From contig CM119371.1 in the NCBI GenBank assembly GCA_051294905.1, forward strand, positions 6,138,001 through 6,202,000: a stretch of 64,000 nucleotides of DNA, in the 5' to 3' direction. The first letter of the stretch is position 1; every line of letters starts with the position of its first letter. This DNA is from Botryllus schlosseri. Lineage: Eukaryota. The notes under the pieces are model-generated. The model had not been told where the DNA came from and searched no databases. It was given only the letters and a program-made list of their open reading frames with translations. Position numbers and translations under genes: made by a program. Positions 3,601 to 53,676 of the stretch are shown here, one piece after another.

Positions 3601-6600
3601 TGGAATATAACGAAAGCGAGATGCCAGTAATCTAATTCTAATCCAATATCTTTTTCCAATCGAATTTGGAAAAACTTGTGCAGCAAAACTTGTGCAGCTA
3701 TAAGTCTAATTCGACCCCGTAACCCAACCCTAGAATAGTTGTACACATTGGTAAGCTCAGAAGACTTGTTTACTTTTCGACAGAACAATTTAGCAATATT
3801 TGACATTTCTTTCAACACACCATACAGCATAAAATTTAGTTAGTGGCGTTTAACATGACTTCACCTTACCGAACCTTCAATATTTACAACACATGTAATA
3901 TCAAAAAGACAGCAGTGAACTTTCTCAATAAATAACAGTGTTAAATATTAGTTTTAAAGTTTGATGTAAGAAATTTTAGGTTGATTTCAACTGTTGATGG
4001 TTCTCCGCAAAATTCACTTGAAAGGTTATAGCCGATCGCCATGCTAAAAAAGTTGAGAGCCACTAATCTAGACCAGCAGCACCTTTTAGACTCAATGGAT
4101 AAATTAATTACAAATAGCCGGTGAAGTAGTTCCTAAGTTGAATAAAAGGTAGGGAAAGTAGTTCCGTACCTGCGTAGATCCCGTGAAAGCAACTTTATCC
4201 ACATCTTCATGAGCAGCCAGCATGGAACCAAAAGCTCCATTACCAGTAACAACATTGAAAACTCCTGAAATTTTTTAAATACTAGGTCTTGCACAATCGA
4301 ATGATACAAAGATAGCTACCGGTAAGTTGCTTGTTCACTGAAAGTACCGTGAGTGTCAGTGTGTATGAAGAGTCAGTGCTATCTGCATATTCTGACAGAG
4401 GCGGCCAACCCGCGGCCTGCGAGAAGGCTTGGTAATTTTCGAAATTAGTTGTATTATGAACAACGGATTGCCATGATTGTGAACTTGCAAAGCCAACCAA
4501 AATTCCCTGCAAACTGAGCCCAGCGATATGCAGCAGATCCACAATATACCCAAGTATAAGTACTTTACAAGTAACCATATAATTGACCAAGTGCGTGTGG
4601 CCCTTTGGCTGAAAAGGTTGCCGCCCCCCCCCCTTGTTCTAGGACCATGTCAACCTCTATCACTGACCTGGTGCAATCCAGCTTCATGGCAGATTTCGGC
4701 CAACAAGAGTGCACTCAACCTCGTGAAGGTCGCTGGCTTCAGCACCACTGTATTTCCCATAGCCAGAGCGGGGCAGACCTAAATAAAAATCGAAGATAAG
4801 AAACTATTTATGAGGAGTATATGCAGCTGAAAAAAAAAGGCGTGTTTGAGAATATTCCAAATTTACTAACGCGTGCATGATGCTGATAATATAAGGATCA
4901 GCTACCTTTTCTCCCGCTGACGAACTTAGGCGTAACATGTATGCATGTTGGTGAAAGATCCAATTTTACATGCCACGATTAGGATCGCAGGGAAGCACAG
5001 CTGTTACATCTATCACATCGCACCAGAAGATGTCAATTGTCAATCGCTCAATTTTGCATACAAATAAATATGTAGCCTCAGCGGTAGGTCGTGGACCACA
5101 GTGCACTTTCTCCGCGACCCCGGAAAATAGGCAAACAACCTCATTGGAGACGCGACCCCCAGTTTGGGAACCTCTGGCTTAAGGAATTTTGAAATGCTGA
5201 AATTAATTGTGGTTTAAAAATATTATTGTTGTTCAAAATTAGTTATACTCCCGTGCGCAACATCACTATTCCTCACTAGCTGGCATCGATACAGCTTTGT
5301 CGATGGTAAAAGCATTCCATGGACGAAGAATTAGTTTGTATGAATGACCTTATTGCCTTGACGTGAAACGGTACAGACACTACCAAGACCAAGATGCTTT
5401 GATAACAACTTGTGGCTTCGCCACAACATTAAGCTTTACGAGGAGATAGGTTTCCAGCAAATACCGTGTCTAGCTAACCCCAATCTCTATTCTTCAGTCG
5501 CTAAAACTGTTGTCAGGTTTCGTGCGTGGCTCATATTTTGTAAAATACAATAAAAGTGATGATCACCATATTTTTGTTGATTTGTTTTCTTTGATTTAAT
5601 ATTATTTCTTTTGTGGTAACTAGTGTAACTGCGTCGGTCACCCATGTCAGAGAGCCCAACGTTGTACTGACGTAAAGTTATAAAATCTTGTTTGGAAAAC
5701 TGTACGGTCTATTTTATGTTGGTATTGAATTCATGAGGTGGTCCGCGACCCGTTTTGAGTTGGCGAGCCCTGCCCTAAACCCACACACAACCAATTAAGT
5801 ATACCTAAATTGTTATACAAATTATTCATCACATATTCATAAACCCAACTTCAGAATGGGAAAGAGCTTCATATTGTCTCATCTTACCTTCCACGTGAGT
5901 AGCATCAATGGGAAATTCCACGGCACAATAGCTCCAACCACGCCTGAAAGTAAGATAATGTATTCAGATTCACCACCATGCCAGAGTCCACCGACACAGG
6001 GATATAAACATCGATTGGTCCAAATATGTATATTCATAATCAGCAGTTCTTTGATTCTCATCCGCTCAAGGCAAACGTTTGGCAATGCGACACACACTAG
6101 ACCACTGGTTCTTAACCTTTTGAAGGGGGCGGAAACACTCAGGGGGCGATATGGGGGGGGGGGGGGCGGGCGCTGAGAAAAATGGCTTCGCAGTAGATGA
6201 TGTGGTAGTATGACATATCATTAATGAGTATTTAGAGCAAATTAACATTCAACAAAACATGTCAAATCCCGAAATGTTTGGTTGCGCTATGCGACGATGT
6301 TTGCTGCATATATATTTTCACAAATGTAGTGGGTTATTCTAATTCATGTAAAACGAATTGCGCGTACTTTTAGATCGCCAATTTCCCGTTAAAATGCTGC
6401 TGTCACGCTTGCTAGGGTTATTTTCAACTAAATGTTTCGAATTAGGTATTATATCTCGCAGCGCACAGCGTGTGGAAATCTAAGAAGGAGGCACTGTATA
6501 TCACTTTTGAGAGTTTTGAAGCTTTGTGCACGAAATGAATAACTAAATATAATTGTAGTTATAGGAGAACTACAAAATGAAATCGTCAGAATATTTCTTC

Positions 6601-22705: not shown

Positions 22706-24033
22706 GTTGACAGCTGACTATCAGTTTTAGGTAGTTTTGAGCAGTTCTAAGGCTGGGTGGGACATGGAAATGATATCCTGAACTAGGAATGCCTTATATA
22801 GTGGGGTTTTGTAGCACTCCAAACCGCAACAGCTGCATAAATCCATGTTATATGTCACTTTAACTAGGCTAGGTAAAATCGTGACACTCAGATTTTAGGG
22901 GAATCCCCTATTTTCAGCTGCTATTCTTCCAGCTCAATGTGCACACGGATGCAGGGGATGAATTACAAAAAAAAGTTGCCAGTAAGGTATAAGGCATGGG
23001 AAACGGACTGAAAACCTAGACTTTTTGAAAGTCGGTCAATTCTGAACAACCCTAACCTCCATGGATGATTGTACTGGACACGACTCGAACATTTCCTCGA
23101 AGATTCCGATACCGTTGCACGAAGCTAAAACCCGTCCCCGAACCCGGACCGTCAAACAATCCAGTTTCTAGATGCGACAATGAATTTATTGAATTCGCAG
23201 GACTGTGTTGGAAATGTGCATATTGGAACAGATATTATACGAGAAAAACAAATTATTTTCACCGTAAATAGCCGTTTGAACCTTTCGCTATTGAAAATGA
23301 TTCTAAATTCTAATTAAACATTTATGAAAAATAGTGCAGGTCCGCCGATCTAATTGGCGAACCTACGGGGCTCGTTCACTTTCGGACCAAAAATCAATTT
23401 TCTCCATGAGGCTGTGGTAGATTTGGTCCTGAAGTGAACGAGCCCCGTCCCGGTCCGTATTGAGGCGCGTCGAGTCGCGTCGGTCGCAGGCGGACAGGGC
23501 TATCGGCGGCGGCTGTTTTATTTTTTGATTCGTACTCGTTCGGGTCGGATTCCGTCGCATGTTTTGTTTGTGATTTTGTTGTGGGTAGTTGTGTGACCAG
23601 ACGTGAGTTTTGACTGTAAAGTCGTTTTGTCAAGTGGGTCCGAGCCAGTATATACGTTACGTCAGATAACCCTAACCTTGGCCTTTGTAAATACTAGTCT
23701 GCTCAGATGTACGATTAGGATTCTTCGGCACACGGTTGTTCGATTCCGATTCCGAACGGCATTATTCGGATTAGCGTGGATTTTTGGTCGAGATTGTTCG
23801 GCTTCGGGCGGATAGTTTCTCAGAGACTCGAGCTGTTGGACGGACGCGGATTGTCAGAAATCAATATCCGCTGATCGATCTCTGATTCGTTGTTGAAATT
23901 CCTGTTTATACTGTACTTCACCCCGGTCGACACCAATATTCGACTGAAGCAGAAATCTCGAATAAATATCCTGGCGCAGCGCTTTCTGTGACGACAAAGT
24001 AGTGCAACGCGCGCACGCGTCGCTTTTCACCGT

Positions 24034-24285
24034 CATTCTAGGCAGGTCGTAACCGTGCCGGGACTTGTTAATGCAAGCCCTTTTTATTCTTTATCCACGT
24101 AGCTTTTTATCAGCATTCTAGGCAGGGCGTAACCGTGCCGGGACTTGTTAATGCAAGCCCTTTTTATTCTTTATCCACGTAGCTTTTTATCAGCATTCTA
24201 GGCAGGGCGTAACCGTGCCGGGACTTGTTGCTATAAGCCCCTATTCGCTTCTTTCACCATCATCCTAGGCAGGGCGTAACCATAC
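24034..24285. repeat. 80-bp tandem subrepeat in the spacer (also ~36901 and ~44604)
   Basis: CATTCTAGGCAGG(T/G)CGTAACCGTGCCGGGACTTGTT at 24034, 24114 and 24194, partial at 24261. Confidence 0.85.
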
Positions 24286-25995
24286 CGTATTCTTTCGCTC
24301 TTCTTTTTCGCCTTTGGTGGGATTCGAAGCCCGTCTCTTCTGGGCGGCGCGGCGAGGCAAGCGCAGTGCTCTTACCCATTAGGCCACGACGCCCTCGAGA
24401 ACGGTAGACGATACGCGGCAATTCGTTTTCACACGCTCGCGTCATCCGCTGGGGGTCTCTCGCGTTTGCGCGCTCCCACCATCCGCGAACGGGCGGGCGG
24501 GCGGGCGGGCGGGCGGGCTCGCTCGCTCGCTCGTAGTTGGGTTCCGAGCGTGCACGATGGCACGGGCACTCAAAAATGAATCGAGTAACGATTTTCAAGA
24601 TTCGAATCGTGTAGTGATACATGACTTCTTAGCGTACTGAAATTATACGATCTTGTCGCTACGCTAAAAGTTGAATTATAGTTTCGTTGCAATTTCCCAA
24701 TTTGTTACTTTTAAAAACTCGATTGGTCGCGTTGCGGCATACGAAGCCGGGTGCGTCATTGTATATGAGATATCAATGAAGTCGTGGTCGAGCCGCGGCA
24801 ACAGTGACAATGCATGCGCAATAGGACTGTTGAAAAATAACCTTAATTCCTGAATCTTGCTGGTTACGTGATTAAATCGTTAGGTTGCCTTGAAAAACGA
24901 CGTACACCAAATTTGAATTCATTCTAACCGATATTCGCGGATTTCGTACAGCATGAAAATTTTGAATTTGCCTAAAAATGCAAAAAAAAATTTTTTTCAA
25001 ATCTTTCTTTTTGCCAACCAACCCCATGAAATTGTTGCGCTGTCTTCAAAAATGATGATGATTTGACTCAATTCCAAGCCGTAGAAGTGGAGTTATTTCA
25101 GTTTTTCTTTGATAATTCTGGGATTATCCTTGATCGGTGGATCATCCCAGAATTATCATCAAAAATGCGCAATTAAACGGGTACGCTCGAAAATATGCCT
25201 GGCTGCCCTGCCGCAATAACATTTAATCCGACGCGAAATTGACATTTTATTCGCTGTGGCCACGCTACATGTATCATTTGTATACATTTAAATTTCCACG
25301 TCGTTCTCATTGATAATCGAACAGTCGACACGTCTCGAAGTCCAATACACATTTTCGTCTACTTATGACTGACCCGTCGTTTCCGATTGCCTATCGCTCT
25401 TTTAATTTAGAGTCCCAATTTCCGGCGCGGCGCTCCACGCTCAGGCTCTCGCTCTCCCCCGTGGCGAGCGACGGCCGATCAATGGGCTTTTGCCGCGTCG
25501 TAGTACTGGCTGGCGACGTGGCAGAACCGGGCTGCGTTCACCGCCTGACAGGTCTGAACTGCCCCTCGGATGAGCGCGGGTCCGATAGGGCTGCGGGTCT
25601 TGCTAGCTCCGCGAAACGCGGCTTTAGGAAGTAGAAGTGTTGATTTTGCACAGCTCGATCGAGCCGCCCCGCCGTCGAAAACCGGTCGTTTACGCAGCCG
25701 CGACGTCTCGCGCGGATCCGGAACGGGCGCGCCGGTCAGCGCGCGAACACGCTCCGCCCCGCGAACCCATTCGGGTCGGTCGGCCACTTCCGGGGTCGGC
25801 ACCACGGCCCCGGTCACGACGAACACTAGCACAGAAAGCCGTGCCCCGACCGGCGTCGGCCGTCGCCGAGAGCTTCTTCGTTTCGTTCGCGTCTGCTCGT
25901 TCGGCAGACGTTGGTTATATAGTAATTTGCGCCGTTTCCCGATTTCTACAACAACTGCTGAAATATTTACCGTTCTATTCGTACGTACAAGCACG

Positions 25996-26532
25996 ATGTC
26001 AGCCGCCAAGAAAACTACGACGACGCCGAGTCACGCTCCTTTCAAGGACATGATCGTCGCCGCCATCAAGAAGCTGGGCGACAAGAAAGGCTCCTCGCGT
26101 CAAGCCATCAAAAAGCACGTTTTGAGCAGCAACAAAGTCACCGAGCAGTCGACTAAAACCAACCTGAACCGGACTCTCGCAAAAATGCTCGCGTCCGGCC
26201 AGCTCGTCCACCCGAAGAACAGCACGGGACGGTACAAGCTCGCCGCTCCGAAGGCCCCGGCCCAGCAGGCAGCCAAAAAGAAGACCGTCGTCGCCAAGAA
26301 GAAGAAACCGGCCGCCAAGAAGGCCGCCGTCGGCAAGGAATCGACCAAAAAAACTACGGCCAAAAAGCCCAAAGCGAAGAAGACTCCCGTCAAGAAAGCA
26401 GCGGCCAAGAAATCGGCAACGGTCAAGAAGAGCGCCGCCAAAAAGCCGGCTGCCAAGAGACCCGCTTCGAAAAAATCGCCGAAAAAAGTGGTCAAGAAGG
26501 CTGCCAAAAAGACCTCAGCCAAGAAGAAGTAA
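25996..26532 (+). CDS. H1: Linker histone H1 (178 aa)
   Basis: SHAPFKDMIVAAI..KKGSSRQAIKK..GRYKL globular domain, K/A/P-rich tail, TATA ~25915, stem-loop 26569-26584. Confidence 0.93.
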   Translation: MSAAKKTTTTPSHAPFKDMIVAAIKKLGDKKGSSRQAIKKHVLSSNKVTEQSTKTNLNRTLAKMLASGQLVHPKNSTGRYKLAAPKAPAQQAAKKKTVVAKKKKPAAKKAAVGKESTKKTTAKKPKAKKTPVKKAAAKKSATVKKSAAKKPAAKRPASKKSPKKVVKKAAKKTSAKKK

Positions 26533-26948
26533 ACGCTGGCGTGTGTCGTCAACACCTCCACTATTAACGGCTCTTTTCAGGGCCATCCAAAGTTGATGTT
26601 TACGCTCATAGAGTACGGACAGGCTGCCGCAGTTACGCGACGGCCGGCCAGACTTGTAGTACAAATTGCGCATTTAGTTAGTTGACGGTTCAATTTGTTG
26701 AGCAGTTCTAGTTTTAGCCGCGCACTTGGTACAAGTCGGGTGGTTTATAGAAAAAGTAATTGGAGTCGGTTGATCGGGAAGGAAGTAAGTAAGTAAGTAA
26801 GTAAGTGAGTAACTAACTAACTAACTAACTTGATTAAATACTATTCGATCGACCAAAATAAGGCGGCGATATCCTCTGCTAATTTTCAACAAGTTCGGGT
26901 GGCTCTGAAAAGAGCCGTTTTCGTCTTGTGATCGCAGTAGCGAGTCGC

Positions 26949-27305
<357 letters not shown>

Positions 27306-27588
27306 TCAATAGCGAATGGCACGCTTCGGCACTCAACGCATTACGTGAAGGTCGCCAGCGGACGTTCTCGAAACGCGTCTAGCGCGCCAATTTCGACGGC
27401 CGAGTATAAATAGCCTCGCGTGACACGCCGGACGATTACTAGTGGCATTCAGCGACGACCGAGAATTTTAGAAATTTCGTACGTAAATCGGAGAGAGAGA
27501 CAGTGACAGTATGGCAAGAACAAAGCAAACCGCGTTGTTGAAATAGACATTTCACATTTCTACTGCACGTCAGTAACGATCGAAAAAA

Positions 27589-27654
27589 ATGTCAGGAAGA
27601 GGGAAGGGTGGTAAAGGACTGGGAAAAGGAGGCGCCCGCAAGCAGCTCGCTTAA
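27589..27654 (+). other. Upstream micro-ORF in the retroelement leader, [21 protein letters not shown] (H4 1-15 + H3 17-21)
   Basis: Direct translation of ATGTCAGGAAGAGGGAAGGGTGGTAAAGGACTGGGAAAAGGAGGCGCCCGCAAGCAGCTCGCTTAA. Confidence 0.8.
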
Positions 27655-27659
27655 GGAGT

Positions 27660-29198
27660 ATGTCTGCGACGGGTGTAGAGAGGGGTACGGCCCCAATGGA
27701 TTATGCCAATGCGGCAGGAGCAACCATGCCAATGGATAGATCGTGTGATCTGAAGGTCAAACTGGACAAACCGCCAACGAGCAAAGAGGTACTGAGTTTC
27801 TTTAATAAAGTAGGAATCAATAAGGAAGAAGTTGATGGACTAATTAGATTTCCAAACGGACAATGTGATATCACATTCCGAACTAGAGCGATGGCGGTAA
27901 TAGCAGACAGGAACATGAGAAAAATGAAATCGGAAGGGATATCCCTTCCGTTCCACAATTTATACATTGCAGAAAATGTGGCAATTTACCTCAGCTGGGT
28001 GCCGGCCTGCATGGGGAATGGATTAATAGCACAGCACTTTGAGAACAACTATGGACCGGTAAAAAGTATATACGAACAAAGGGATGACCTGGGATACAGG
28101 AATGGTATAAGAAGTGTACTCATTGAGAAGAGGTATGTGGATGAAAACCCCATTAAATCCTACATATACATAAACAGGTTCAGAATCGCTGTCAAATATC
28201 GGGGGCAAACGCAAACTTGTGCACTATGTGAAGGGCCGGGACACATTGCCAGAATGTGCCCGGAAAAACTACGCCAAACTACCCAGCAACAGGGTAACCA
28301 AAGAAGGCAGCCCTTCAGGAATCCGCTTTACGATTACGTGAAGCCGGTTGTCCCGCAAGAGGCTGCTAGAGAGCAAGCGCCGACACCCACGCGTCCAAAA
28401 GGACACGACGATCTATCGCAGGACCGCTACAGCGACCAGCCACCAGAGGGAGACGCTAAGTCGGAAGAAATGACGTCGCCGAAAGCGTCAGAGGCCGGGA
28501 GCCAATCAGAGAGCGAGGAACAACGAGAGGGATCAGCTGCTAGTGGCGTGATGCCCATACATGGAGGTGAGAGACGAGAGACAAACTCTGACGATGAGCA
28601 GGAGGAGAAACCAGACGCCGGAACGGCCGAGCAGCAAGGCGCGGCTGCAAATTCATTCAGCGAAGAGCTGCGGCCAGTGAAGGATGTTGTTGCGGATCTC
28701 AAAGACGTACTAACCAAGTCGCAAAGTTCGGAAGACAGCAGTTCGGTATTTCAGAGTGAGCAGGCTAACTGGTTAATTCAATCTGAACCTTTTTTCAACA
28801 GCCCTAAGATCAGAGACAATAAGAGAAGCCATAAAAGCACGGACTCTGAGGAAAGCGCAACACTCATAAGACATTTCAGCTATGCGGGAGAGCGAAAAGG
28901 AACAATCGCATGTCAAGGATGTGGAAGGCCCGTAGCCTACCTAGCAAACTCGAAGGTATGCACATGCATGGTGTGTAACATTGAACATTCTTTTATACAG
29001 TCATGCTGCGACGAAAAGGAAATCTTGATAATCACGGGAGAAGCGCTAAACAGAAGACACACTATAAGCTGCGGGATATGCAACAGGGCGTGCATCATCA
29101 CCGACTGCTGTGGCATGCTGGTAAGCGAGGCATCTGCCAAGCTATACAAGAAATGCAAAATATGCAGGAAGCCAAAAATAAAAAGAAAAGACAACTAG
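27660..29198 (+). CDS. Retrotransposon ORF1 (512 aa): RRM-like region, CCHC knuckle, acidic linker, Cys-rich C-terminus
   Basis: CALCEGPGHIARMC (CX2CX4HX4C) after a KYRGQ motif, as in Tx1-type ORF1. Confidence 0.88.
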   Translation: MSATGVERGTAPMDYANAAGATMPMDRSCDLKVKLDKPPTSKEVLSFFNKVGINKEEVDGLIRFPNGQCDITFRTRAMAVIADRNMRKMKSEGISLPFHNLYIAENVAIYLSWVPACMGNGLIAQHFENNYGPVKSIYEQRDDLGYRNGIRSVLIEKRYVDENPIKSYIYINRFRIAVKYRGQTQTCALCEGPGHIARMCPEKLRQTTQQQGNQRRQPFRNPLYDYVKPVVPQEAAREQAPTPTRPKGHDDLSQDRYSDQPPEGDAKSEEMTSPKASEAGSQSESEEQREGSAASGVMPIHGGERRETNSDDEQEEKPDAGTAEQQGAAANSFSEELRPVKDVVADLKDVLTKSQSSEDSSSVFQSEQANWLIQSEPFFNSPKIRDNKRSHKSTDSEESATLIRHFSYAGERKGTIACQGCGRPVAYLANSKVCTCMVCNIEHSFIQSCCDEKEILIITGEALNRRHTISCGICNRACIITDCCGMLVSEASAKLYKKCKICRKPKIKRKDN

Positions 29199-29219
29199 TG
29201 AGGTACTTTAGATAGGGAA

Positions 29220-32200
29220 ATGGCTAATGGGGATATTAGGATTTTGACGCTTAACGTCAACGGGATGGGAAATGGGCGGAAACGACAAGTAATCTATGAT
29301 TTCATTAAAAAGACAGGTGCAAACATTACGTGCCTGCAGGAAACGCACTCCGCATTAGAGACGGAAGATATCTGGGCAAAGGAATGGCATGGGAAGTCCT
29401 TCTGGAACTCACAAGACGGCGCCACGGCGGGAACTGCAATCCTGCTCAACACGAGAAACAAGAGAGCCATGCGAACCCTGAACGTGACGAAAGACATGGA
29501 AGGGAGAATGACACAGCTAAGAGTGCAAGTGGGTACCCATAAACTAGATATAACTTCATACTATGGTCACAATGACAGAACCAAAAGAAGAATGCAGCTA
29601 CGACAACTAGCTACAAGGGTAAGAGGTACAAAGTACCAAATTATAGCAGGAGACTTTAACTGTGTAGACTCTTGTGAACTCGACCGGCAACCTGTTGACC
29701 AGAGAAGGGAAGAAGCCAACCGACACGCGAACACGATGAAAACAATCGGCGTAGAGGATGCGTTCAGGAGGGCCAATGGCAATAGAAAGGAATTCACCTT
29801 CTTCTACAACAAGGGCAAATCACGGCTCGACAGGATCTACACCACGCCCAACATCCAAACGGTAAACTGTAAACATGTGCCTTGCGCTTTTTCAGACCAT
29901 GACGCCACCGTGGCCACGGTAAAGCTGGATCAACAACAGGACACGAAACGCACGATCTGGAAAAACAATACCGACGTCTACAAGCAAGAAACGTTCATGA
30001 GGGAGCTAGAAAATAAATGGAAAATGTGGGAAACCCTATACGACACCGTGTACACGAGCAGAATAGAATGGTGGGAAGCCGTGAAGCGAAGGCTAAAGCT
30101 CCTAAACATCCAATACGCCGCCAGGACGCGAAGGCTAGAAAAAGAGCGGCATAAAGAGGACGAAAAAGAATTAAAAATAGTAAGAAACCGTGTCATTCAT
30201 AATATTACTCTTTTGCCAGAATACAGAAGAGTGAAAAGGAAAATATGGAAAAACAAGGAGGAGAGCATCCAAAAACTCCAGAAAGAAGCCAAGGCCGAGG
30301 CGGAAGAAACGCTAGCTCAAAAACCGTACATGCTCTGCGAAACCATCAAAAAACGGAGAGATGTGGCTTCAATCAGCGCAATCAGAAACAAGGTCGGCGA
30401 TATCACCACAGACACCAGGGAGATCCGGAAAACTGCCGAAGATTACTACGAAAATCTATATAGTAAGAAGGGTACGGATACCAATATTGCAGACTCCTTT
30501 TTTAGATCGCAGGCTGGACAGCTGACGCAAAACCAGACGAAGGATATAGACCGGCCCATCACCGAAGATGAGGTGCGACAGGCCATTCTCCAGCAAAAAC
30601 GAAATCGAACGCCCGGTAAGGACGGCATAAGTGCCGAGTTCTACGTACAAGCCCTAGACCTAATAGCGAAGGACCTAACCGCGGTTTTTGATGAACTCTA
30701 CTCAAAGCACACCGCCACGAGTAATTTTGCAGGTGGAATAATAAAGACAATCCACAAGAAGGGCGACGACAAGGAAATGAAAAACTACCGCCCAATAACA
30801 TTACTCAATGTAGACTACAAGATCATCAGCAAAATCCTGACGAACAGGCTGAAGAAGACCCTGCCAGATATTACGCACCACCACCAGCACGTAAACCCAC
30901 CAAATAATATCGGAAATCTCAACCTTGTTTTAAGGGAAATTGCGGCAGAAATGCGAGAGAGGAATCAGGGAGCCATCGTCTCGATAGACTTCCGCAAGGC
31001 GTACGACACAATCGACCACCAATTCTTACACAGAGCGCTGGAGGAGACAGGCCTAGGCAACAACTTCCGACGCTTCATCCGATCAATATACGAAAACGGA
31101 GAGGCCACCATATCAATAGGCGGCGCAATCGGTGAAAATATCAGAATCCAGGAAGGTATCAAGCAAGGCGATCCGATTTCTATGTACCTTTTTACCATAG
31201 TGACGGACACGCTCCTACAGAAGCTTAACAGTTCTATTGCAGGCTTCAAACTCTCTGGCATGAAAGGGAAAATAGCCACACCCTCATACGCAGATGACAT
31301 CACCGTTACGCTGGCAAGGGAAGGTGACAGCAGCAAGGCAATCAATGTAATAGAGGAATTCGGCAAGGCGAGCGGTCTACGGATCAATCAGGAGAAAACG
31401 AGGGGCATAACGTTTGAGCGTAAAAGATGGAGACAACCCACCACGAAATTCAAATGGACCAACAAGCTAACCGCCCTTGGGCACACCATAGCACATGAAG
31501 AAAAGGATGAGACGGAGCCATGGACCGAGGCGATCCACAAAACGGTCGACAAGCTCAACGAGTGGAGAACACTCCACCTAAAAAGGCATGAAAAGGTGAG
31601 CATATTGCGCACTAACATTCTACCTCTTTTCACATATACGGCCTCCAAGAACAGGATGCCGCCACCGATCAAGAAGAAGCTTAAATCAGAAGCAGCAGCA
31701 TTTGTGATGGGACTGGACGGCAAAATGGAATATGAGAAAATCATACAGGCCAAGGAAATGGGTGGACTGGACCTAGTGGATATCCCGACCATGACCGATC
31801 TCGCGTTCATCAAACCGGCGCTGAAATACCTTGAAAAAGAAGCGAAGCCCGAAACGGAATGGGAAAAAAGAATAGAAAACCAGCTGGCTCTCACCATGAG
31901 AAGGTATGGGAAACACAAAATCGATAACACCATACCTCATGTTTTGCAGCCGCTAAAGCACTGGCGAGAAACCGCAAAAACCATGGAGGGAATAAAATTC
32001 AACCGGCAGGACATCAAATTGAAGCGGCAGGAAAAATATCGAGCGTTTATCACAAGGAACAACGCCAGACAACTGAGGGAGATGGAAGGACCAAATTGGA
32101 GGAACATCAACAACCGCTACCTCACGCACGACCAGAGGAAGTTAAACTGGGACATAGCAAACAGACTGCTCCCAACGAATAACAAACTACGAGCGACACT

Positions 32201-32600
32201 GGCTTCCAGAACGTGGGACTGCCCGCTGTGCGGAACAGAAATTGAGGATCACGAACATCTGTTCATAAAGTGCAGAAAGGTAAAACCGCTCATACTTGTT
32301 TTCATAGATGCATGGAACAAAGTCACGGGGAGGACAGCAAGACAGCCAGGCCTGCAGGAAATGATCGATATGAACCCAGAAACTCCAATGACGCAGGAAC
32401 AACTCCTGGCCTACCTCAAAATAATCTCGACGCTCAAGCAGACCACATGGGATGCAAGAAACCTAAAGAAACACGAGGGTAAACAAATAACACATGTTTG
32501 GCTTTTAAGATCATGTAACAGAAGATTAAAAGGGAGGAGAAAACAAGAGATGGAACCCAGGGCGGAAGAAATACTGGACAAGATCTTGGAGGAAATCTGA
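29220..32600 (+). CDS. Retrotransposon ORF2 (1126 aa): APE endonuclease, reverse transcriptase, C-terminal CCHC finger
   Basis: LTLNVNG, LQETH, AGDFN, SRLDRIY, FSDH; YRPITLLNVDYKI, DFRKAYD, GIKQGDPIS, YADD; CPLC..EDHEHLFIKC. Confidence 0.97.
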   Translation: MANGDIRILTLNVNGMGNGRKRQVIYDFIKKTGANITCLQETHSALETEDIWAKEWHGKSFWNSQDGATAGTAILLNTRNKRAMRTLNVTKDMEGRMTQLRVQVGTHKLDITSYYGHNDRTKRRMQLRQLATRVRGTKYQIIAGDFNCVDSCELDRQPVDQRREEANRHANTMKTIGVEDAFRRANGNRKEFTFFYNKGKSRLDRIYTTPNIQTVNCKHVPCAFSDHDATVATVKLDQQQDTKRTIWKNNTDVYKQETFMRELENKWKMWETLYDTVYTSRIEWWEAVKRRLKLLNIQYAARTRRLEKERHKEDEKELKIVRNRVIHNITLLPEYRRVKRKIWKNKEESIQKLQKEAKAEAEETLAQKPYMLCETIKKRRDVASISAIRNKVGDITTDTREIRKTAEDYYENLYSKKGTDTNIADSFFRSQAGQLTQNQTKDIDRPITEDEVRQAILQQKRNRTPGKDGISAEFYVQALDLIAKDLTAVFDELYSKHTATSNFAGGIIKTIHKKGDDKEMKNYRPITLLNVDYKIISKILTNRLKKTLPDITHHHQHVNPPNNIGNLNLVLREIAAEMRERNQGAIVSIDFRKAYDTIDHQFLHRALEETGLGNNFRRFIRSIYENGEATISIGGAIGENIRIQEGIKQGDPISMYLFTIVTDTLLQKLNSSIAGFKLSGMKGKIATPSYADDITVTLAREGDSSKAINVIEEFGKASGLRINQEKTRGITFERKRWRQPTTKFKWTNKLTALGHTIAHEEKDETEPWTEAIHKTVDKLNEWRTLHLKRHEKVSILRTNILPLFTYTASKNRMPPPIKKKLKSEAAAFVMGLDGKMEYEKIIQAKEMGGLDLVDIPTMTDLAFIKPALKYLEKEAKPETEWEKRIENQLALTMRRYGKHKIDNTIPHVLQPLKHWRETAKTMEGIKFNRQDIKLKRQEKYRAFITRNNARQLREMEGPNWRNINNRYLTHDQRKLNWDIANRLLPTNNKLRATLASRTWDCPLCGTEIEDHEHLFIKCRKVKPLILVFIDAWNKVTGRTARQPGLQEMIDMNPETPMTQEQLLAYLKIISTLKQTTWDARNLKKHEGKQITHVWLLRSCNRRLKGRRKQEMEPRAEEILDKILEEI

Positions 32601-32631
32601 AGCAAGAGCAACTTACCAAACCGCTACGTGA

Positions 32632-33087
<456 letters not shown>

Positions 33088-33517
33088 TAAGCTGCTGGCG
33101 ACTAGCACGACGCAAAATAAACGGCTCTTTTCAGAGCCACCCGAACTTCACGGTATCGAGAGAGTTTAGAATCAGCGCGCTGTTATCAGTTTTATAATTA
33201 TTGTCATCGCGGCATGTTGCCTTCCGCAGCGTCCGTTTCACAGCGCGCGCGCTACTTTGTAATACACAAACCAGTCTGGAAGATTCGCATCCCACGAACC
33301 TCTCACGGCAGATAAGCTACCCATGTAATACACGAACCCGTCTCGTTCATCGCACTGCAGGTACCGGAAACGCAACTTACCACCTGGCGTAAATAACAGA
33401 GTACGGCATAACAACTGAATTGATAACGCTTGCGAGAGCAAGCAAGTCAAAACGCACAAGAGCGGGTGGCCCTTACAAGGGCCGTTGTTTGCGATTTTCG
33501 GCGTCGAGCACAACCAT

Positions 33518-33877
33518 CTACTTAGAGCTGGTGTACTTGGTGACGGCTTTGGTGCCTTCAGACACGGCGTGCTTGGCCAGTTCGCCGGGCAGCAAGAGCC
33601 TGACGGCGGTCTGGATCTCGCGGCTGCTGATGGTCGAGCGCTTGTTGTAGTGTGCGAGACGAGACGACTCGCTGGCGATCCTCTCGAAGACGTCGTTGAC
33701 GAACGAGTTCATGATGCTCATGGCCTTGCTGGAGATTCCAGTGTCGGGATGCACCTGCTTCAGCACCTTGTAGATGTAGATGCTGAAGCTTTCCTTTCGC
33801 CTCGACTTTCTTTTCTTCTTGCCGTCTTTCGGCGTTTGCTTCTTTACGAGCTTCTTTGAACCTTTGCTGGCGACCAT
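33518..33877 (-). CDS. H2B: Histone H2B
   Basis: [35 protein letters not shown]; stem-loop 33468-33483. Confidence 0.98.
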
Positions 33878-34150
33878 TATGCTATTCTGTAGTTTTGCCG
33901 CGATGAGCTGCTTGCACGTGAGTATATACGAATTGATTCTGGCGCCAAGGCGCAGAACGTTTATATAGTCGGGCGTATGCTAATGAAGCGAACAGCGAAT
34001 GCACGAAACGAGACAGCTGCGTCACGGATTATTTTGGCGCATGAATTAGCCGTCTCTCGTTTCATGTCACAATGCTGTGACACGGGCGAGCTATAAAGCG
34101 CCAGTTGTGCGCCCTCGAATTCATTTATCGAAAAGATACTACCTATCTAG

Positions 34151-34543
<393 letters not shown>

Positions 34544-35354
34544 GCGCATCGCAAAAGCCTTCATCATCACAAACGGCACTTTTCAGTGCCACCCGATCGA
34601 GCAGGTTTTACGAAATTGTATACACACTTACATGTCATTGCGCGCGCAGTATAATCATAAGACTGAGACTCGAGCGAGCCTAGAGTACAGCGTTTTCAAA
34701 GCAATACTTGTATGGTTACGGCGATGTACATTGTCGAACAATTTTGTCTGGAATTGAATAGAATAGTGTTTACGGTGGCCAACTAGAATTAGACGCGCTC
34801 GACGGGTGGCGGGCGGTACGGCGGCGGCGCCGCCTTGATTGCTCAGCGGGTGTCTGTCACCGCTATTGCTTGCAAACGACTTGCTGAGGCGAGCGACGCA
34901 ATACACAATTCCCAATACACAAGCCGGTATGCCTGATGCGTGAATCAAAAAAAGGCTGAGCGCACTCAGCCGCCTCTGTCAAGAGATACGTACCTTCAAA
35001 TACAACCAAATACTCCAATGTCTGGGTCGTACGGAGCAGGGGCGTACTAGTACTTGGAGAGTCGTAAGTACTGGTGCGGGTAGAAAGGATCTCGTATGTT
35101 ACGTCTTACAGTTGGGACCTGCCGTCGCTTGGAATTTTGTTGTTCGGCGCAATTCCGTTGTTCGCGCAAAGTTACAGTGTAAGTGTCGAGGTTCGGGTTT
35201 CGACACGATTAGGTACTCGGGCGATACCAAACCAAGCGCCGTTCTGTTCTGTGACGTCGCAGCGAGTGGGTGATCCCGCCGGCGCCCAACGGTTTTGTTC
35301 GTGACGCGCCGACAAAGTGTTTCAATGTACTGCGCAGACTCTTTACTCCCTAGT

Positions 35355-35420
35355 GACGACGACGACGACGATGATGACGATGATGATGATGATGTGTGAT
35401 GATGATGATGATGTGTGATG
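35355..35420. repeat. (GAC/GAT)n microsatellite just downstream of U2 (also ~43058-43123)
   Basis: gacgacgacgacgatgatgacgatgatgat.. Confidence 0.85.
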
Positions 35421-35445
35421 AATACTCCGACACGTCGGAGCGTGC

Positions 35446-35632
35446 AGGCCAAACTTGGAGGTGCTGCAATACCAAGGTGACCCACGGCGGAGGCGCAGCA
35501 AGCCGCAAACTCTCCACCAACGCTGCAAAAATCAAATTAATACACAGAGGGGGTCGATGACCCCCGTTACAGGTATTAACCTATAAAGAACAGATACTAC
35601 ACTTGATCTTAGCCATAGGGCCGAGAAGCGAT
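35446..35632 (-). ncRNA. U2: U2 spliceosomal snRNA
   Basis: Minus strand starts ATCGCTTCTCGGCCCTATGGCTAAGATCAAGTGTAGTATCTGTTCT; stems IIa and IIb, Sm site GATTTTTG, stem III, loop IV TATTGCAGCACCT; ~187 nt. Confidence 0.95.
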
Positions 35633-38600
35633 GGGGAGGAAGGGCCCCGTGACACTCATATTCAGTGAATTTTCAATTTTTTCTCACCCGATTTCGTAAA
35701 CAGAAAAATTTCGCGCTTGAAAATTATCGCCACCGTAATTATGGTCACCGTAAATACTATATTATTGAAATCCAAATTTTTCTACTGCAATAACTGGGTT
35801 TCTAGCGGTTGGAGTGGAGAGCAAAGTGGGTGTGCAGCGGTTTACGAAACGTGTCGGAGTGCACATCGAACATCATCCTCAGAGGGATCAGGATCGGGAT
35901 TGGCTGGAAGAAAAGAAAACACATTTTCTGCATATTGAAAAATTGCTAACCCGTTGGTGCCCGCCCGCCCGCCCGCCCGCCCGCCCTACGATCGAGATCG
36001 CCCGATGCTACAGTTGCAGTGCAGAACGACACTTGGTGTGCTATCGCCGACTACCTAAGCCTGTCGAAGCACGTAATACACTGTCGCTCGTGCAAGAGAA
36101 GGTTGGCAGAGCCGGTATTGCGCGAATTTCAAGCGACGGGTGGTCGCGACGGGTGGTCCTTTTCAGACTAGGGCGAGTGCTGATAATTCTCCAACTACTA
36201 GTAGTCCCTCTACCTTTCATATTTATTGGAGTTTTGGTTGTTATAAGGTTGGTATGCCTCCCTTTCTCTCGTTTGCTGAGTGCGCTCGGCTCTTTTCCGA
36301 CAAATGACAAGTAAACCCGGTCCGTATTGAGGCGCGTCGAGTCGCGTCGGTCGCAGGCGGACAGGGCTATCGGCGGCGGCTGTTTTATTTTTTGATTCGT
36401 ACTCGTTCGGGTCGGATTCCGTCGCATGTTTTGTTTGTGATTTTGTTGTGGGTAGTTGTGTGACCAGACGTGAGTTTTGACTGTAAAGTCGTTTTGTCAA
36501 GTGGGTCCGAGCCAGTATATACGTTACGTCAGATAACCCTAACCTTGGCCTTTGTAAATACTAGTCTGCTCAGATGTACGATTAGGATTCTTCGGCACAC
36601 GGTTGTTCGATTCCGATTCCGAACGGCATTATTCGGATTAGCGTGGATTTTTGGTCGAGATTGTTCGGCTTCGGGCGGATAGTTTCTCAGAGACTCGAGC
36701 TGTTGGACGGACGCGGATTGTCAGAAATCAATATCCGCTGATCGATCTCTGATTCGTTGTTGAAATTCCTGTTTATACTGTACTTCACCCCGGTCGACAC
36801 CAATATTCGACTGAAGCAGAAATCTCGAATAAATATCCTGGCGCAGCGCTTTCTGTGACGACAAAGTAGTGCAACGCGCGCACGCGTCGCTTTTCACCGT
36901 CATTCTAGGCAGGTCGTAACCGTGCCGGGACTTGTTAATGCAAGCCCTTTTTATTCTTTATCCACGTAGCTTTTTATCAGCATTCTAGGCAGGGCGTAAC
37001 CGTGCCGGGACTTGTTAATGCAAGCCCTTTTTATTCTTTATCCACGTAGCTTTTTATCAGCATTCTAGGCAGGGCGTAACCGTGCCGGGACTTGTTGCTA
37101 TAAGCCCCTATTCGCTTCTTTCACCATCATCCTAGGCAGGGCGTAACCATACCGTATTCTTTCGCTCTTCTTTTTCGCCTTTGGTGGGATTCGAAGCCCG
37201 TCTCTTCTGGGCGGCGCGGCGAGGCAAGCGCAGTGCTCTTACCCATTAGGCCACGACGCCCTCGAGAACGGTAGACGATACGCGGCAATTCGTTTTCACA
37301 CGCTCGCGTCATCCGCTGGGGGTCTCTCGCGTTTGCGCGCTCCCACCATCCGCGAACGGGCGGGCGGGCGGGCGGGCGGGCGGGCTCGCTCGCTCGCTCG
37401 TAGTTGGGTTCCGAGCGTGCACGATGGCACGGGCACTCAAAAATGAATCGAGTAACGATTTTCAAGATTCGAATCGTGTAGTGATACATGACTTCTTAGC
37501 GTACTGAAATTATACGATCTTGTCGCTACGCTAAAAGTTGAATTATAGTTTCGTTGCAATTTCCCAATTTGTTACTTTTAAAAACTCGATTGGTCGCGTT
37601 GCGGCATACGAAGCCGGGTGCGTCATTGTATATGAGATATCAATGAAGTCGTGGTCGAGCCGCGGCAACAGTGACAATGCATGCGCAATAGGACTGTTGA
37701 AAAATAACCTTAATTCCTGAATCTTGCTGGTTACGTGATTAAATCGTTAGGTTGCCTTGAAAAACGACGTACACCAAATTTGAATTCATTCTAACCGATA
37801 TTCGCGGATTTCGTACAGCATGAAAATTTTGAATTTGCCTAAAAATGCAAAAAAAAATTTTTTTCAAATCTTTCTTTTTGCCAACCAACCCCATGAAATT
37901 GTTGCGCTGTCTTCAAAAATGATGCAAAACAAATTTGACTCAATTCCAAGCCGTAGAAGTGGAGTTATTTCAGTTTTTCTTTGATAATTCTGGGATTATC
38001 CTTGATCGGTGGATCATCCCAGAATTATCATCAAAAATGCGCAATTAAACGGGTACGCTCGAAAATATGCCTGGCTGCCCTGCCGCAATAACATTTAATC
38101 CGACGCGAAATTGACATTTTATTCGCTGTGGCCACGCTACATGTATCATTTGTATACATTTAAATTTCCACGTCGTTCTCATTGATAATCGAACAGTCGA
38201 CACGTCTCGAAGTCCAATACACATTTTCGTCTACTTATGACTGACCCGTCGTTTCCGATTGCCTATCGCTCTTTTAATTTAGAGTCCCAATTTCCGGCGC
38301 GGCGCTCCACGCTCAGGCTCTCGCTCTCCCCCGTGGCGAGCGACGGCCGATCAATGGGCTTTTGCCGCGTCGTAGTACTGGCTGGCGACGTGGCAGAACC
38401 GGGCTGCGTTCACCGCCTGACAGGTCTGAACTGCCCCTCGGATGAGCGCGGGTCCGATAGGGCTGCGGGTCTTGCTAGCTCCGCGAAACGCGGCTTTAGG
38501 AAGTAGAAGTGTTGATTTTGCACAGCTCGATCGAGCCGCCCCGCCGTCGAAAACCGGTCGTTTACGCAGCCGCGACGTCTCGCGCGGATCCGGAACGGGC

Positions 38601-40358: not shown

Positions 40359-40793
<435 letters not shown>

Positions 40794-47880: not shown

Positions 47881-48234
47881 TCAATAGCGAATGGCACGCT
47901 TCGGCACTCAACGCATTACGTGAAGGTCGCCAGCGGACGTTCTCGAAACGCGTCTAGCGCGCCAATTTCGACGGCCGAGTATAAATAGCCTCGCGTGACA
48001 CGCCGGACGATTACTAGTGGCATTCAGCGACGACCGAGAATTTTAGAAATTTCGTACGTAAATCGGAGAGAGAGACAGTGACAGTATGGCAAGAACAAAG
48101 CAAACCGCGTTGTTGAAATAGACATTTCACATTTCTACTGCACGTCAGTAACGATCGAAAAAAATGTCAGGAAGAGGGAAGGGTGGTAAAGGACTGGGAA
48201 AAGGAGGCGCCCGCAAGCAGCTCGCTTAAGGAGT

Positions 48235-49773
48235 ATGTCTGCGACGGGTGTAGAGAGGGGTACGGCCCCAATGGATTATGCCAATGCGGCAGGAGCAACC
48301 ATGCCAATGGATAGATCGTGTGATCTGAAGGTCAAACTGGACAAACCGCCAACGAGCAAAGAGGTACTGAGTTTCTTTAATAAAGTAGGAATCAATAAGG
48401 AAGAAGTTGATGGACTAATTAGATTTCCAAACGGACAATGTGATATCACATTCCGAACTAGAGCGATGGCGGTAATAGCAGACAGGAACATGAGAAAAAT
48501 GAAATCGGAAGGGATATCCCTTCCGTTCCACAATTTATACATTGCAGAAAATGTGGCAATTTACCTCAGCTGGGTGCCGGCCTGCATGGGGAATGGATTA
48601 ATAGCACAGCACTTTGAGAACAACTATGGACCGGTAAAAAGTATATACGAACAAAGGGATGACCTGGGATACAGGAATGGTATAAGAAGTGTACTCATTG
48701 AGAAGAGGTATGTGGATGAAAACCCCATTAAATCCTACATATACATAAACAGGTTCAGAATCGCTGTCAAATATCGGGGGCAAACGCAAACTTGTGCACT
48801 ATGTGAAGGGCCGGGACACATTGCCAGAATGTGCCCGGAAAAACTACGCCAAACTACCCAGCAACAGGGTAACCAAAGAAGGCAGCCCTTCAGGAATCCG
48901 CTTTACGATTACGTGAAGCCGGTTGTCCCGCAAGAGGCTGCTAGAGAGCAAGCGCCGACACCCACGCGTCCAAAAGGACACGACGATCTATCGCAGGACC
49001 GCTACAGCGACCAGCCACCAGAGGGAGACGCTAAGTCGGAAGAAATGACGTCGCCGAAAGCGTCAGAGGCCGGGAGCCAATCAGAGAGCGAGGAACAACG
49101 AGAGGGATCAGCTGCTAGTGGCGTGATGCCCATACATGGAGGTGAGAGACGAGAGACAAACTCTGACGATGAGCAGGAGGAGAAACCAGACGCCGGAACG
49201 GCCGAGCAGCAAGGCGCGGCTGCAAATTCATTCAGCGAAGAGCTGCGGCCAGTGAAGGATGTTGTTGCGGATCTCAAAGACGTACTAACCAAGTCGCAAA
49301 GTTCGGAAGACAGCAGTTCGGTATTTCAGAGTGAGCAGGCTAACTGGTTAATTCAATCTGAACCTTTTTTCAACAGCCCTAAGATCAGAGACAATAAGAG
49401 AAGCCATAAAAGCACGGACTCTGAGGAAAGCGCAACACTCATAAGACATTTCAGCTATGCGGGAGAGCGAAAAGGAACAATCGCATGTCAAGGATGTGGA
49501 AGGCCCGTAGCCTACCTAGCAAACTCGAAGGTATGCACATGCATGGTGTGTAACATTGAACATTCTTTTATACAGTCATGCTGCGACGAAAAGGAAATCT
49601 TGATAATCACGGGAGAAGCGCTAAACAGAAGACACACTATAAGCTGCGGGATATGCAACAGGGCGTGCATCATCACCGACTGCTGTGGCATGCTGGTAAG
49701 CGAGGCATCTGCCAAGCTATACAAGAAATGCAAAATATGCAGGAAGCCAAAAATAAAAAGAAAAGACAACTAG
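48235..49773 (+). CDS. Retrotransposon ORF1, copy 2
   Basis: Translation identical to 27660-29198. Confidence 0.88.
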   Translation: MSATGVERGTAPMDYANAAGATMPMDRSCDLKVKLDKPPTSKEVLSFFNKVGINKEEVDGLIRFPNGQCDITFRTRAMAVIADRNMRKMKSEGISLPFHNLYIAENVAIYLSWVPACMGNGLIAQHFENNYGPVKSIYEQRDDLGYRNGIRSVLIEKRYVDENPIKSYIYINRFRIAVKYRGQTQTCALCEGPGHIARMCPEKLRQTTQQQGNQRRQPFRNPLYDYVKPVVPQEAAREQAPTPTRPKGHDDLSQDRYSDQPPEGDAKSEEMTSPKASEAGSQSESEEQREGSAASGVMPIHGGERRETNSDDEQEEKPDAGTAEQQGAAANSFSEELRPVKDVVADLKDVLTKSQSSEDSSSVFQSEQANWLIQSEPFFNSPKIRDNKRSHKSTDSEESATLIRHFSYAGERKGTIACQGCGRPVAYLANSKVCTCMVCNIEHSFIQSCCDEKEILIITGEALNRRHTISCGICNRACIITDCCGMLVSEASAKLYKKCKICRKPKIKRKDN

Positions 49774-49794
49774 TGAGGTACTTTAGATAGGGAA

Positions 49795-52700: not shown

Positions 52701-53175
52701 GCACGACCAGAGGAAGTTAAACTGGGACATAGCAAACAGACTGCTCCCAACGAATAACAAACTACGAGCGACACTGGCTTCCAGAACGTGGGACTGCCCG
52801 CTGTGCGGAACAGAAATTGAGGATCACGAACATCTGTTCATAAAGTGCAGAAAGGTAAAACCGCTCATACTTGTTTTCATAGATGCATGGAACAAAGTCA
52901 CGGGGAGGACAGCAAGACAGCCAGGCCTGCAGGAAATGATCGATATGAACCCAGAAACTCCAATGACGCAGGAACAACTCCTGGCCTACCTCAAAATAAT
53001 CTCGACGCTCAAGCAGACCACATGGGATGCAAGAAACCTAAAGAAACACGAGGGTAAACAAATAACACATGTTTGGCTTTTAAGATCATGTAACAGAAGA
53101 TTAAAAGGGAGGAGAAAACAAGAGATGGAACCCAGGGCGGAAGAAATACTGGACAAGATCTTGGAGGAAATCTGA
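49795..53175 (+). CDS. Retrotransposon ORF2, copy 2
   Basis: Translation identical to 29220-32600. Confidence 0.97.
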   Translation: MANGDIRILTLNVNGMGNGRKRQVIYDFIKKTGANITCLQETHSALETEDIWAKEWHGKSFWNSQDGATAGTAILLNTRNKRAMRTLNVTKDMEGRMTQLRVQVGTHKLDITSYYGHNDRTKRRMQLRQLATRVRGTKYQIIAGDFNCVDSCELDRQPVDQRREEANRHANTMKTIGVEDAFRRANGNRKEFTFFYNKGKSRLDRIYTTPNIQTVNCKHVPCAFSDHDATVATVKLDQQQDTKRTIWKNNTDVYKQETFMRELENKWKMWETLYDTVYTSRIEWWEAVKRRLKLLNIQYAARTRRLEKERHKEDEKELKIVRNRVIHNITLLPEYRRVKRKIWKNKEESIQKLQKEAKAEAEETLAQKPYMLCETIKKRRDVASISAIRNKVGDITTDTREIRKTAEDYYENLYSKKGTDTNIADSFFRSQAGQLTQNQTKDIDRPITEDEVRQAILQQKRNRTPGKDGISAEFYVQALDLIAKDLTAVFDELYSKHTATSNFAGGIIKTIHKKGDDKEMKNYRPITLLNVDYKIISKILTNRLKKTLPDITHHHQHVNPPNNIGNLNLVLREIAAEMRERNQGAIVSIDFRKAYDTIDHQFLHRALEETGLGNNFRRFIRSIYENGEATISIGGAIGENIRIQEGIKQGDPISMYLFTIVTDTLLQKLNSSIAGFKLSGMKGKIATPSYADDITVTLAREGDSSKAINVIEEFGKASGLRINQEKTRGITFERKRWRQPTTKFKWTNKLTALGHTIAHEEKDETEPWTEAIHKTVDKLNEWRTLHLKRHEKVSILRTNILPLFTYTASKNRMPPPIKKKLKSEAAAFVMGLDGKMEYEKIIQAKEMGGLDLVDIPTMTDLAFIKPALKYLEKEAKPETEWEKRIENQLALTMRRYGKHKIDNTIPHVLQPLKHWRETAKTMEGIKFNRQDIKLKRQEKYRAFITRNNARQLREMEGPNWRNINNRYLTHDQRKLNWDIANRLLPTNNKLRATLASRTWDCPLCGTEIEDHEHLFIKCRKVKPLILVFIDAWNKVTGRTARQPGLQEMIDMNPETPMTQEQLLAYLKIISTLKQTTWDARNLKKHEGKQITHVWLLRSCNRRLKGRRKQEMEPRAEEILDKILEEI

Positions 53176-53206
53176 AGCAAGAGCAACTTACCAAACCGCT
53201 ACGTGA

Positions 53207-53575
<369 letters not shown>

Positions 53576-53576
53576 A

Positions 53577-53676
53577 NNNNNNNNNNNNNNNNNNNNNNNN
53601 NNNNNNNNNNNNNNNNNNNNNNNNNNNNNNNNNNNNNNNNNNNNNNNNNNNNNNNNNNNNNNNNNNNNNNNNNNNN
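53577..53676. other. Assembly gap (100 N)
   Basis: Run of N; continuity across it is not guaranteed. Confidence 1.

Follow-up and report, generated by a model that had tools for sequence, protein, structure and literature searches.

What are probably stacked H3 and H4 target-site relics head a histone-gene retroelement of Botryllus schlosseri

In a histone array of Botryllus schlosseri, a histone H3 gene is interrupted by a retroelement whose first open reading frame is preceded by a far shorter one, a micro-ORF encoding the tail of histone H4 joined to a piece of H3. How a retroelement could come by such a leader, and whether the peptide encoded there has a use of its own, are the questions raised by this locus, which lies in a stretch of 64,000 nt (assembly GCA_051294905.1, contig CM119371.1, positions 6,138,001 to 6,202,000 of the forward strand), hereafter the window; positions below are those of the window unless another contig is named. 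The reading considered probable here is that the leader represents stacked relics of H3 and H4 target sites, heading a histone-gene-specific L1/Tx1-like LINE.

The window contains tandem histone units of ~7.7 kb in which H4 and H3 are arranged divergently. The partner of the interrupted H3 is the local H4 gene (26949-27260, minus strand; recognized from the ORF list, its sequence and an H4 search), which served as the comparison for the leader; in its 5'UTR, CATTCG and TTGAAAT lie 58 and 49 nt upstream of the ATG, respectively. The H3 promoter and 5'UTR occupy 27405-27510 (plus strand), in which TATAAA and a CATTC cap-site motif precede the H3 ATG (27511) by 106 and 65 nt, respectively; the H3 transcription start is a prediction from these motif positions, and this promoter is presumed to be the driver of the element at the window site. 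The H3 frame is broken after codon 8, at 27534/27535, by an insert of 5151 nt (27535-32685). This insert is flanked by an 18-nt target-site duplication (TSD), AGAACAAAGCAAACCGCG, the left copy of which lies at 27517-27534 and the right copy at 32686-32703 (both plus strand), where the H3 coding sequence resumes and continues to its stop codon at 33088-33090; an H3 3' stem-loop follows at 33118-33158 (plus strand; Rfam RF00032, at 27.9 bits short of its gathering score of 34). In intact H3 the 18 nt occur once only, and the uninterrupted H3 at 40383 in the neighbouring unit, with its single AGAACAAAGCAAACCGCG, represents the empty site. The leader, like the element, lies between the two TSD copies and hence belonged to the cDNA that was inserted. 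Upstream of it, the H3 start codon and the eight H3 codons run into the element and reach a TAG (27511-27546, plus strand, by translation), which would be the first upstream ORF if transcription begins at the H3 promoter. Each histone repeat unit also carries a full-length U2 snRNA gene (35439-35632, minus strand, 159.7 bits), and a tandem repeat with a period of ~88 nt and copies 97-98% identical is found at 59259-59957.

A second, identical copy of leader and element lies at 48110-53260 (plus strand; leader at 48110-48234) in a duplicated unit of the array. The array duplication spans 9.5 kb at 99.93% identity, the two elements being 100% identical and the duplicated segments differing solely by an 8-column indel/substitution block at ~25057. 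As the second copy belongs to this duplication, the two window copies are one insertion event. Directly after the duplicated unit lies a gap of 100 N (53577-53676), and the histone array is collapsed or incompletely assembled. A collapsed and gapped array is where H4, H3 and element reads might be mis-joined, and the second copy may itself be an assembly duplicate. That the leader arose in this way is nevertheless scarcely credible: the entire insert lies within a clean TSD of 18 nt, none of the H4 genes available for mis-joining matches the H4 piece, and four runs of one sample (S25, perhaps the source of the assembly) hold 85% of the sampled sequence words across H3, leader and ORF1, junction words being found in S25 only and the other runs being too shallow to call absence.

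The leader itself is composite. Its first 54 nt (27535-27588, plus strand) are an H4-type 5'UTR relic, as seen from alignment to five H4 5'UTRs, of which the contig-8 type is the best match; the 5' end of the leader aligns with these immediately past the conserved CATTCG cap-site motif, the predicted cap site. There follow H4 codons 1-16, ending in GGCGCC (27589-27636, plus strand), which is also the family's canonical 5' junction at H4 sites, and H3 codons 17-21, CGCAAGCAGCTCGCT (27637-27651, plus strand), a canonical H3-site relic by comparison with a related copy, L005, and with H3 paralogues. The resulting micro-ORF comprises 21 codons and a TAA (27589-27654, plus strand, by translation), and this TAA and GGAGT (27655-27659) precede the ORF1 ATG at 27660. 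An earlier note on this DNA had described an H4/H3 micro-ORF ending 5 nt before ORF1, and the layout was confirmed from the sequence; likewise, the nine differences from the local H4 over 48 nt are all synonymous, with the same 16 residues encoded, CGCAAGCAGCTCGC matches the local H3 exactly over 14 nt, and TTGAAAT is found at a near-equal distance from the ATG in the leader (51 nt) and in the local H4 (49 nt). The 48 H4-type nt encode H4 residues 1-16 at 100% identity, the 54 nt before them line up with H4 5'UTRs from just past CATTCG, and the likeness is not chance. The micro-ORF is the host reading frame, truncated and closed by the element's own stop codon. The join that was placed at GGCGCC stood in part: the hexamer is indeed common to H4 and H3, but one base is missing compared with a clean crossover, the local H3 reading GGCGCC-A-CGCAAG and the A being absent at the leader join. 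It is because of this missing base that the H3 codons and the TAA are in frame.

Downstream of the leader, the element encodes two proteins on the plus strand. ORF1 (512 aa, 27660-29198) matches no Pfam family, and ORF2 (1126 aa, 29220-32600) combines an apurinic-type endonuclease with a reverse transcriptase and a zf-RVT module; the Pfam matches are Exo_endo_phos at residues 9-227, RVT_1 at 511-757 and, by a narrow margin, zf-RVT at 959-1021 (27.9 bits, cut-off 27.5). Residues 2-860 of ORF2 align to residues 4-880 of human L1 ORF2p (E 5e-75). A 3'UTR (32601-32685, plus strand) ends in ...ATCAAATGTT; the poly(A) or A-rich tail typical of L1 proper is absent, all copies ending in ...A(T/A)CAAATGT. 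No ribozyme was detected at the 5' end of the element in an Rfam search of 23000-37000 at E up to 1, which returned only U2 and histone stem-loops. The element is best read as an L1/Tx1-like, APE-type LINE of a histone-gene-specific family, a class assignment that comes from the ORF2 domains and the L1 alignment, membership in the Tx1 clade being putative. About 45 related fragments are present in the genome. Outside it, the nearest protein, an ORF2 on a 5209-nt Logan contig of SRR25569776 with 43 nt ahead of ORF1 and 84 nt past ORF2, shows 54% identity and the next ones 29% or less; the only close relatives found elsewhere were P0001, P0090 and P0091, all on Logan contigs, and P0002, at 28% identity, was set aside as too distant to inform.

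Comparison with these fragments revealed that the element is a recombinant. From 27637 to ~28600, and hence over the first ~950 nt of ORF1, it shares 98% identity with lineage B, represented by L005 and L006; past a breakpoint near 28600, the remainder, including ORF2, is ~72% identical to them (lineage A). A tree built on nucleotides 3000-4400, in ORF2, gave an H4-site copy on contig 6 as the sister of lineage A (support 100/99), and lineage B falls elsewhere. L008, a 5'-truncated copy of 1 kb located at a non-histone site, matches lineage A at 99.8-100% identity, and this near identity indicates that lineage A moved recently. L008 (contig 6, 559966-560989) is young, its flanks are inverted repeats of each other, and the target at its 3' junction begins AAGTCGAC. 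The other truncated copy of young age, L006 on contig 9, shares 99-100% identity with L005, and the target at its 3' junction opens with AGGCGCCA.

The relatives also indicate where the two histone pieces end and why. L005, on contig 8, sits inside the H3 gene of another H4/H3 array, in the order H3 codons 1-21, TGA, GGAGT and ORF1 ATG, with the 5' junction ...CAGCTCGCT|TGAGGAGTATG; past its 3' end, ...ATCAAATGT, comes a TSD of 22 nt that ends in CAGCTCGCT. Since H3 codons stand before ORF1 in L005, the H3 piece at the window locus is the tag of an H3-dwelling lineage, and the earlier suggestion that it is the relic of a former H3 target site is borne out by a related copy that occupies exactly that position in H3. 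The H4 sites are on contig 6. At 696.7 kb, an H4 5'UTR and 16 codons are followed by TTC TAG, 6 nt and ATG; at 630.3 kb, the 3' end of one element gives way to an H4 TSD of 17 nt that ends in GGCGCC, and TTC TAG AC ATG of the next element comes directly after; and at 388.9 kb, a 3' end precedes a 22-nt H4 TSD ending in GGCGCC, followed by AAC TAG. All four H4 pieces, that of the window included, end at the same nucleotide (codon 16, GGCGCC). Independent copies share a target nucleotide in both genes, H4 codon 16 at the three contig-6 loci and H3 codon 21 in L005 and the window relic; the histone-site junctions in the assembly number five, of which the three at H4 sites are old and clustered on contig 6. 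More broadly, contig 6 carries, at ~387-702 kb, a group of family members that are old and broken and without exception on the minus strand (L007, L009, L010, L013, L018, L020, L022, L024-L026 and L032). Some of these are arranged in tandem, separated solely by a 17-22-nt H4 remnant, and a downstream remainder of H4 was not seen in the contig-6 loci read.

A common rule of target choice can be proposed from the 3' junctions. These put the first nick at GGCAA^AG of H3, within the codons for GGK (K14), and at GGCAA^AGG of H4, again within GGK (K8), with the second cut ~22 nt downstream in both genes. The targets at the 3' junctions begin A-R-G, mostly followed by ..CC, and this applies to the off-target copies as well (L006, L008, L011 and L017). 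On this basis, the bottom strand would be nicked where GGK is encoded (GG-Y-A-A^A-G), a motif common to the tails of H3 (K14) and H4 (K8), and the top strand would be cut ~22 nt downstream, exactly past H3 codon 21 or H4 codon 16. The window H3 contains TGGCAAG twice, in codons 1-3 and in codons 12-14; the insertion used the first, and the unusual site is therefore explained, as is a TSD of 18 nt at the window element compared with 22 nt at L005. The idea that H4 genes of the arrays escape by synonymous changes in the nick motif was entertained and dropped, as the H4 of the leader itself has GGTAAAGG and GGCAA is not required.

The history built on the directly observed anatomy, TSD bracket, recurrent junctions, mosaic and tree, in which co-transcription at the window locus, reinitiation and the order of events are the inferred parts, would run as follows. 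Elements of the family would lack a promoter of their own and be transcribed from that of the histone gene in which they reside, such that the element RNA would open with the 5'UTR, AUG and initial tail codons of that gene. First, a co-transcript of lineage B at an H3 site would have provided the 5' kilobase of the element together with H3 codons 17-21. Second, this segment would have become joined to an H4 5'UTR and codons 1-16 at the microhomology CC/GGCGCC, either as cDNA joined to a cut H4 target by second-strand priming or through a switch between two co-transcripts. Third, the remaining part of the element would be contributed by lineage A, the nearest relative of which is at an H4 site. 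Fourth, RNA starting at the cap site of the H4 gene would have been copied into the present site, a further TGGCA^AG of H3 (codons 1-3). An earlier residence in an H4 gene is preferred because the H4 piece ends where the family's H4-site copies start and because the sister of its ORF2 is an H4-site copy. Against this model of stacked relics, the intermediate copy at an H4 site was not observed in the assembly, the RNA runs gave no read-through from H3 into ORF1, the histone-site junctions are few, with those in H4 old and clustered, and the join lacks a base.

The main competitor to stacked relics dispenses with that intermediate. In a one-step chimera, reverse transcriptase (RT), while inserting the element into H3 codon 8, would have left the H3-derived tag, jumped to a free H4 mRNA at GGCGCC and run to its 5' end, no copy ever having resided in H4. 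Template-switch chimeras are well known for L1, the U6/L1 chimeras among them. GGCGCC is the only sizeable identity between the tail-coding sequences of H3 and H4, and a homology-guided switch would land there; the leader extends to ~5 nt from the predicted H4 cap site; and the RNA reads confined to the leader bin (X11, X13 and X15), with a 3-nt variant in X15, would fit an expressed H4 mRNA, as far as binned depth can suggest. With the hexamer common to both genes, the join point alone does not separate a one-step switch from stacked relics. What speaks against the one-step route is that the H4 piece ends exactly at the family's H4-site junction, known from three further cases, that the ORF2 lineage is sister to an H4-site copy, and that a single event would have had to combine three templates, namely lineage A RNA, the lineage B co-transcript and H4 mRNA. 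A one-step origin is consequently judged unlikely. The earlier note had proposed capture of the 5' end of a foreign or older H4 mRNA; an origin of the leader from RNA begun at an H4 promoter is retained, as fits its alignment from just past CATTCG, and residence in an H4 gene with read-through from its promoter would explain the H4 piece better than would switching to an H4 mRNA that was free or foreign.

The source of the H4 piece was sought in the assembly. A DNA search with the leader, at E up to 10, matched the two window copies only, and no H4 gene with its 5'UTR and codons was recovered in the assembly by DNA and protein searches. Every H4 gene found by protein search differs from the leader at 8-11 of the 48 nt, all synonymously, and in the 5'UTR as well. 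Two H4 fragments without an N-terminus, on contigs 13 and 1, proved not to be element junctions. A third H4/H3 pair was noted at the very start of contig 6 (2044-2626, L040); its H3 reads GCGCCCCGCAAGCAGCTCGC and is the paralogue nearest to the H3 relic around the join. The earlier note had set its own reading against that of a one-off chimera free of selection, in which an identical H4 paralogue would exist and other family members would lack the leader: an identical paralogue is not present in the assembly, and the chimera, a single event or lineage there, occurs only in the two window copies.

These comparisons also bear on the peptide. On a further reading, the micro-ORF would be kept by selection for a product that serves as a histone-tail mimic or decoy carrying S1, R3, K5, K8 and K12 of H4. 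The frame is intact in the window copy, and every canonical insertion of the family would yield a tail peptide, either H3(1-21) or H4(1-16). Among themselves, though, the H4 paralogues of the genome show 6-10 synonymous differences over the same 48 nt, and the all-synonymous pattern equals the ordinary divergence between them and is no sign of selection on the peptide; the host gene from which the residues were inherited is extremely constrained, and paralogues are equally synonymous. In the old in-situ H4-site copy (contig 6, 696.7 kb), a tail residue has already changed from G to R, and the chimera is a single event in the assembly. Nothing was found in favour of a tail mimic, which is considered very improbable. 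The way of life of the element accounts for the micro-ORF, and a function of the peptide is not needed.

The suggestion of a role as a translation leader fared better, for it fits a pattern seen throughout the family, an in-frame stop with the ORF1 ATG a few nucleotides on. At all 5' junctions seen, the host frame is closed by the first bases of the element within two codons of the host sequence, and at five junctions, from copies 65-98% identical, the ATG of ORF1 lies 2-23 nt past the stop. Junctions of the H3 type have TGA or TAA as the stop codon and those of the H4 type TAG; between L005 (TGA) and the window copy (TAA), lineage B copies that are 98% identical there, the change is from stop to stop. 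Leaky scanning is unlikely because the histone AUGs are in strong contexts, and ORF1 is probably reached, we infer, by termination-reinitiation past a tail peptide of 17-22 codons. At the window locus, two upstream ORFs precede ORF1, that which begins at the H3 AUG and then the H4/H3 one, and the window copy may be poorly translated because two such ORFs should weaken reinitiation.

Most elements of this arrangement have precedents. Transcripts of R1 include 6-27 nt of the 28S sequence that lies upstream, as seen at junctions and in ectopic insertions (Stage and Eickbush, 2009; PMC2718515). As with R1 and R2, a site-specific LINE is established here in a tandem multigene family, and its RNA would carry upstream target sequence (PMC2718515); further likenesses are 5' junctions formed by annealing or microhomology and tandem copies separated by the TSD. 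Unlike R1 and R2, the host here is a protein-coding gene transcribed by Pol II, and the tag brings a host 5'UTR, AUG and codons, which create an upstream ORF, with H3 and H4 hosts stacked. Unlike R1, moreover, the ORF2 is L1-like and apparently not of the R1 clade, and no ribozyme was found. The SLACS, CZAR and NeSL elements sit in spliced-leader genes. They too insert a few nucleotides into a multicopy gene transcribed by Pol II, and their RNA starts with host sequence from the host promoter; they differ in having a restriction-like endonuclease and a non-coding host gene, with neither a host AUG nor an in-frame stop.

Among the targets of the Tx1 clade are the U2 snRNA genes, for Keno, and 5S rDNA, for Mutsu; Tx1L and Dewa are further target-specific members. 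The present family resembles this clade in its APE-type, L1-related ORF2, its C-terminal zinc-binding module and its sequence-specific insertion into multicopy genes, and differs in its histone-gene target; such a target did not turn up in the papers searched and is not known to us for a Tx1-clade LINE. Host sequence at the 5' end of a LINE, inside the TSD, is a feature common to L1 5' transductions and U6-L1 chimeras, but these are sporadic and have no specific target, whereas the host pieces here end at the family's insertion points. Termination-reinitiation operates between LINE ORFs, at UAAUG in SART1 and for human L1 ORF2. In those cases, as here, the downstream AUG is at or a few nucleotides from the upstream stop, the difference being that the upstream ORF here is a truncated host gene in place of ORF1, with a putative function. 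The known targets of site-specific LINEs are rRNA, snRNA, tRNA and spliced-leader genes and repeats. The Tx1-clade LINEs have been listed as a target-specific group, and the same review includes rRNA genes and microsatellites in the targets it gives for such LINEs, the word histone being absent from its text (PMC4640811). Topic searches returned no papers on histone-gene-specific LINEs, the literature coverage being incomplete and novelty not proven.

Target tags on transcripts, microhomology joins, template switching and coupled translation thus all have precedents, and what is new is the class of host and the use of the host AUG. It may tentatively be proposed that the family represents an undescribed L1/Tx1-like lineage specialized for protein-coding genes, which would nick the GGK motif shared by H3 and H4, have neither promoter nor poly(A) of its own, live on the promoter, 5'UTR and AUG of the histone gene, perhaps on its 3' stem-loop too, and reach ORF1 by reinitiation past the truncated tail peptide. 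If true, the stacked H4/H3 leader would preserve a legible trace of moves between two host genes, and homing to a histone coding region with use of the host AUG would be a new arrangement between host and parasite. It would link expression of the element to histone transcription in S-phase and the early embryo, provide a natural case of LINE translation coupled to an upstream ORF, and add to the few natural systems for targeted insertion an endonuclease of L1 type with sequence specificity (GG-Y-A-A^A-G).

Expression was examined by mapping four RNA runs to 27300-33200, with depth binned. Read-through from H3 to ORF1 was not seen in these four runs, which gave no coverage of 27694-28480; histone-type RNAs may be under-represented in the libraries. 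Most of the H3 reads come from other paralogues. The leader bin (27497-27693) attracted a few reads in X11, X13 and X15, and the next 800 nt none. All 11 of the X15 reads over the leader carry CTA>GAC at 27560-27562, and they could stem from a variant of the leader, or from an H4 gene with the leader 5'UTR that is absent from the collapsed arrays, expressed in another sample. The body of the element was covered in X13 only, from ~28680 on, within the lineage A part, and with fixed differences from the window copy. This coverage begins only beyond the A/B breakpoint, which implies that the copies of lineage A being expressed differ from the window copy in their 5' kilobase. Ten of the X13 RNA reads, with six start points, skip 61 nt within ORF1 (28740-28802) at GT..AG ends; removal of 61 nt would shift the ORF1 frame, and the skipped segment may be a cryptic intron or the mark of a variant copy.
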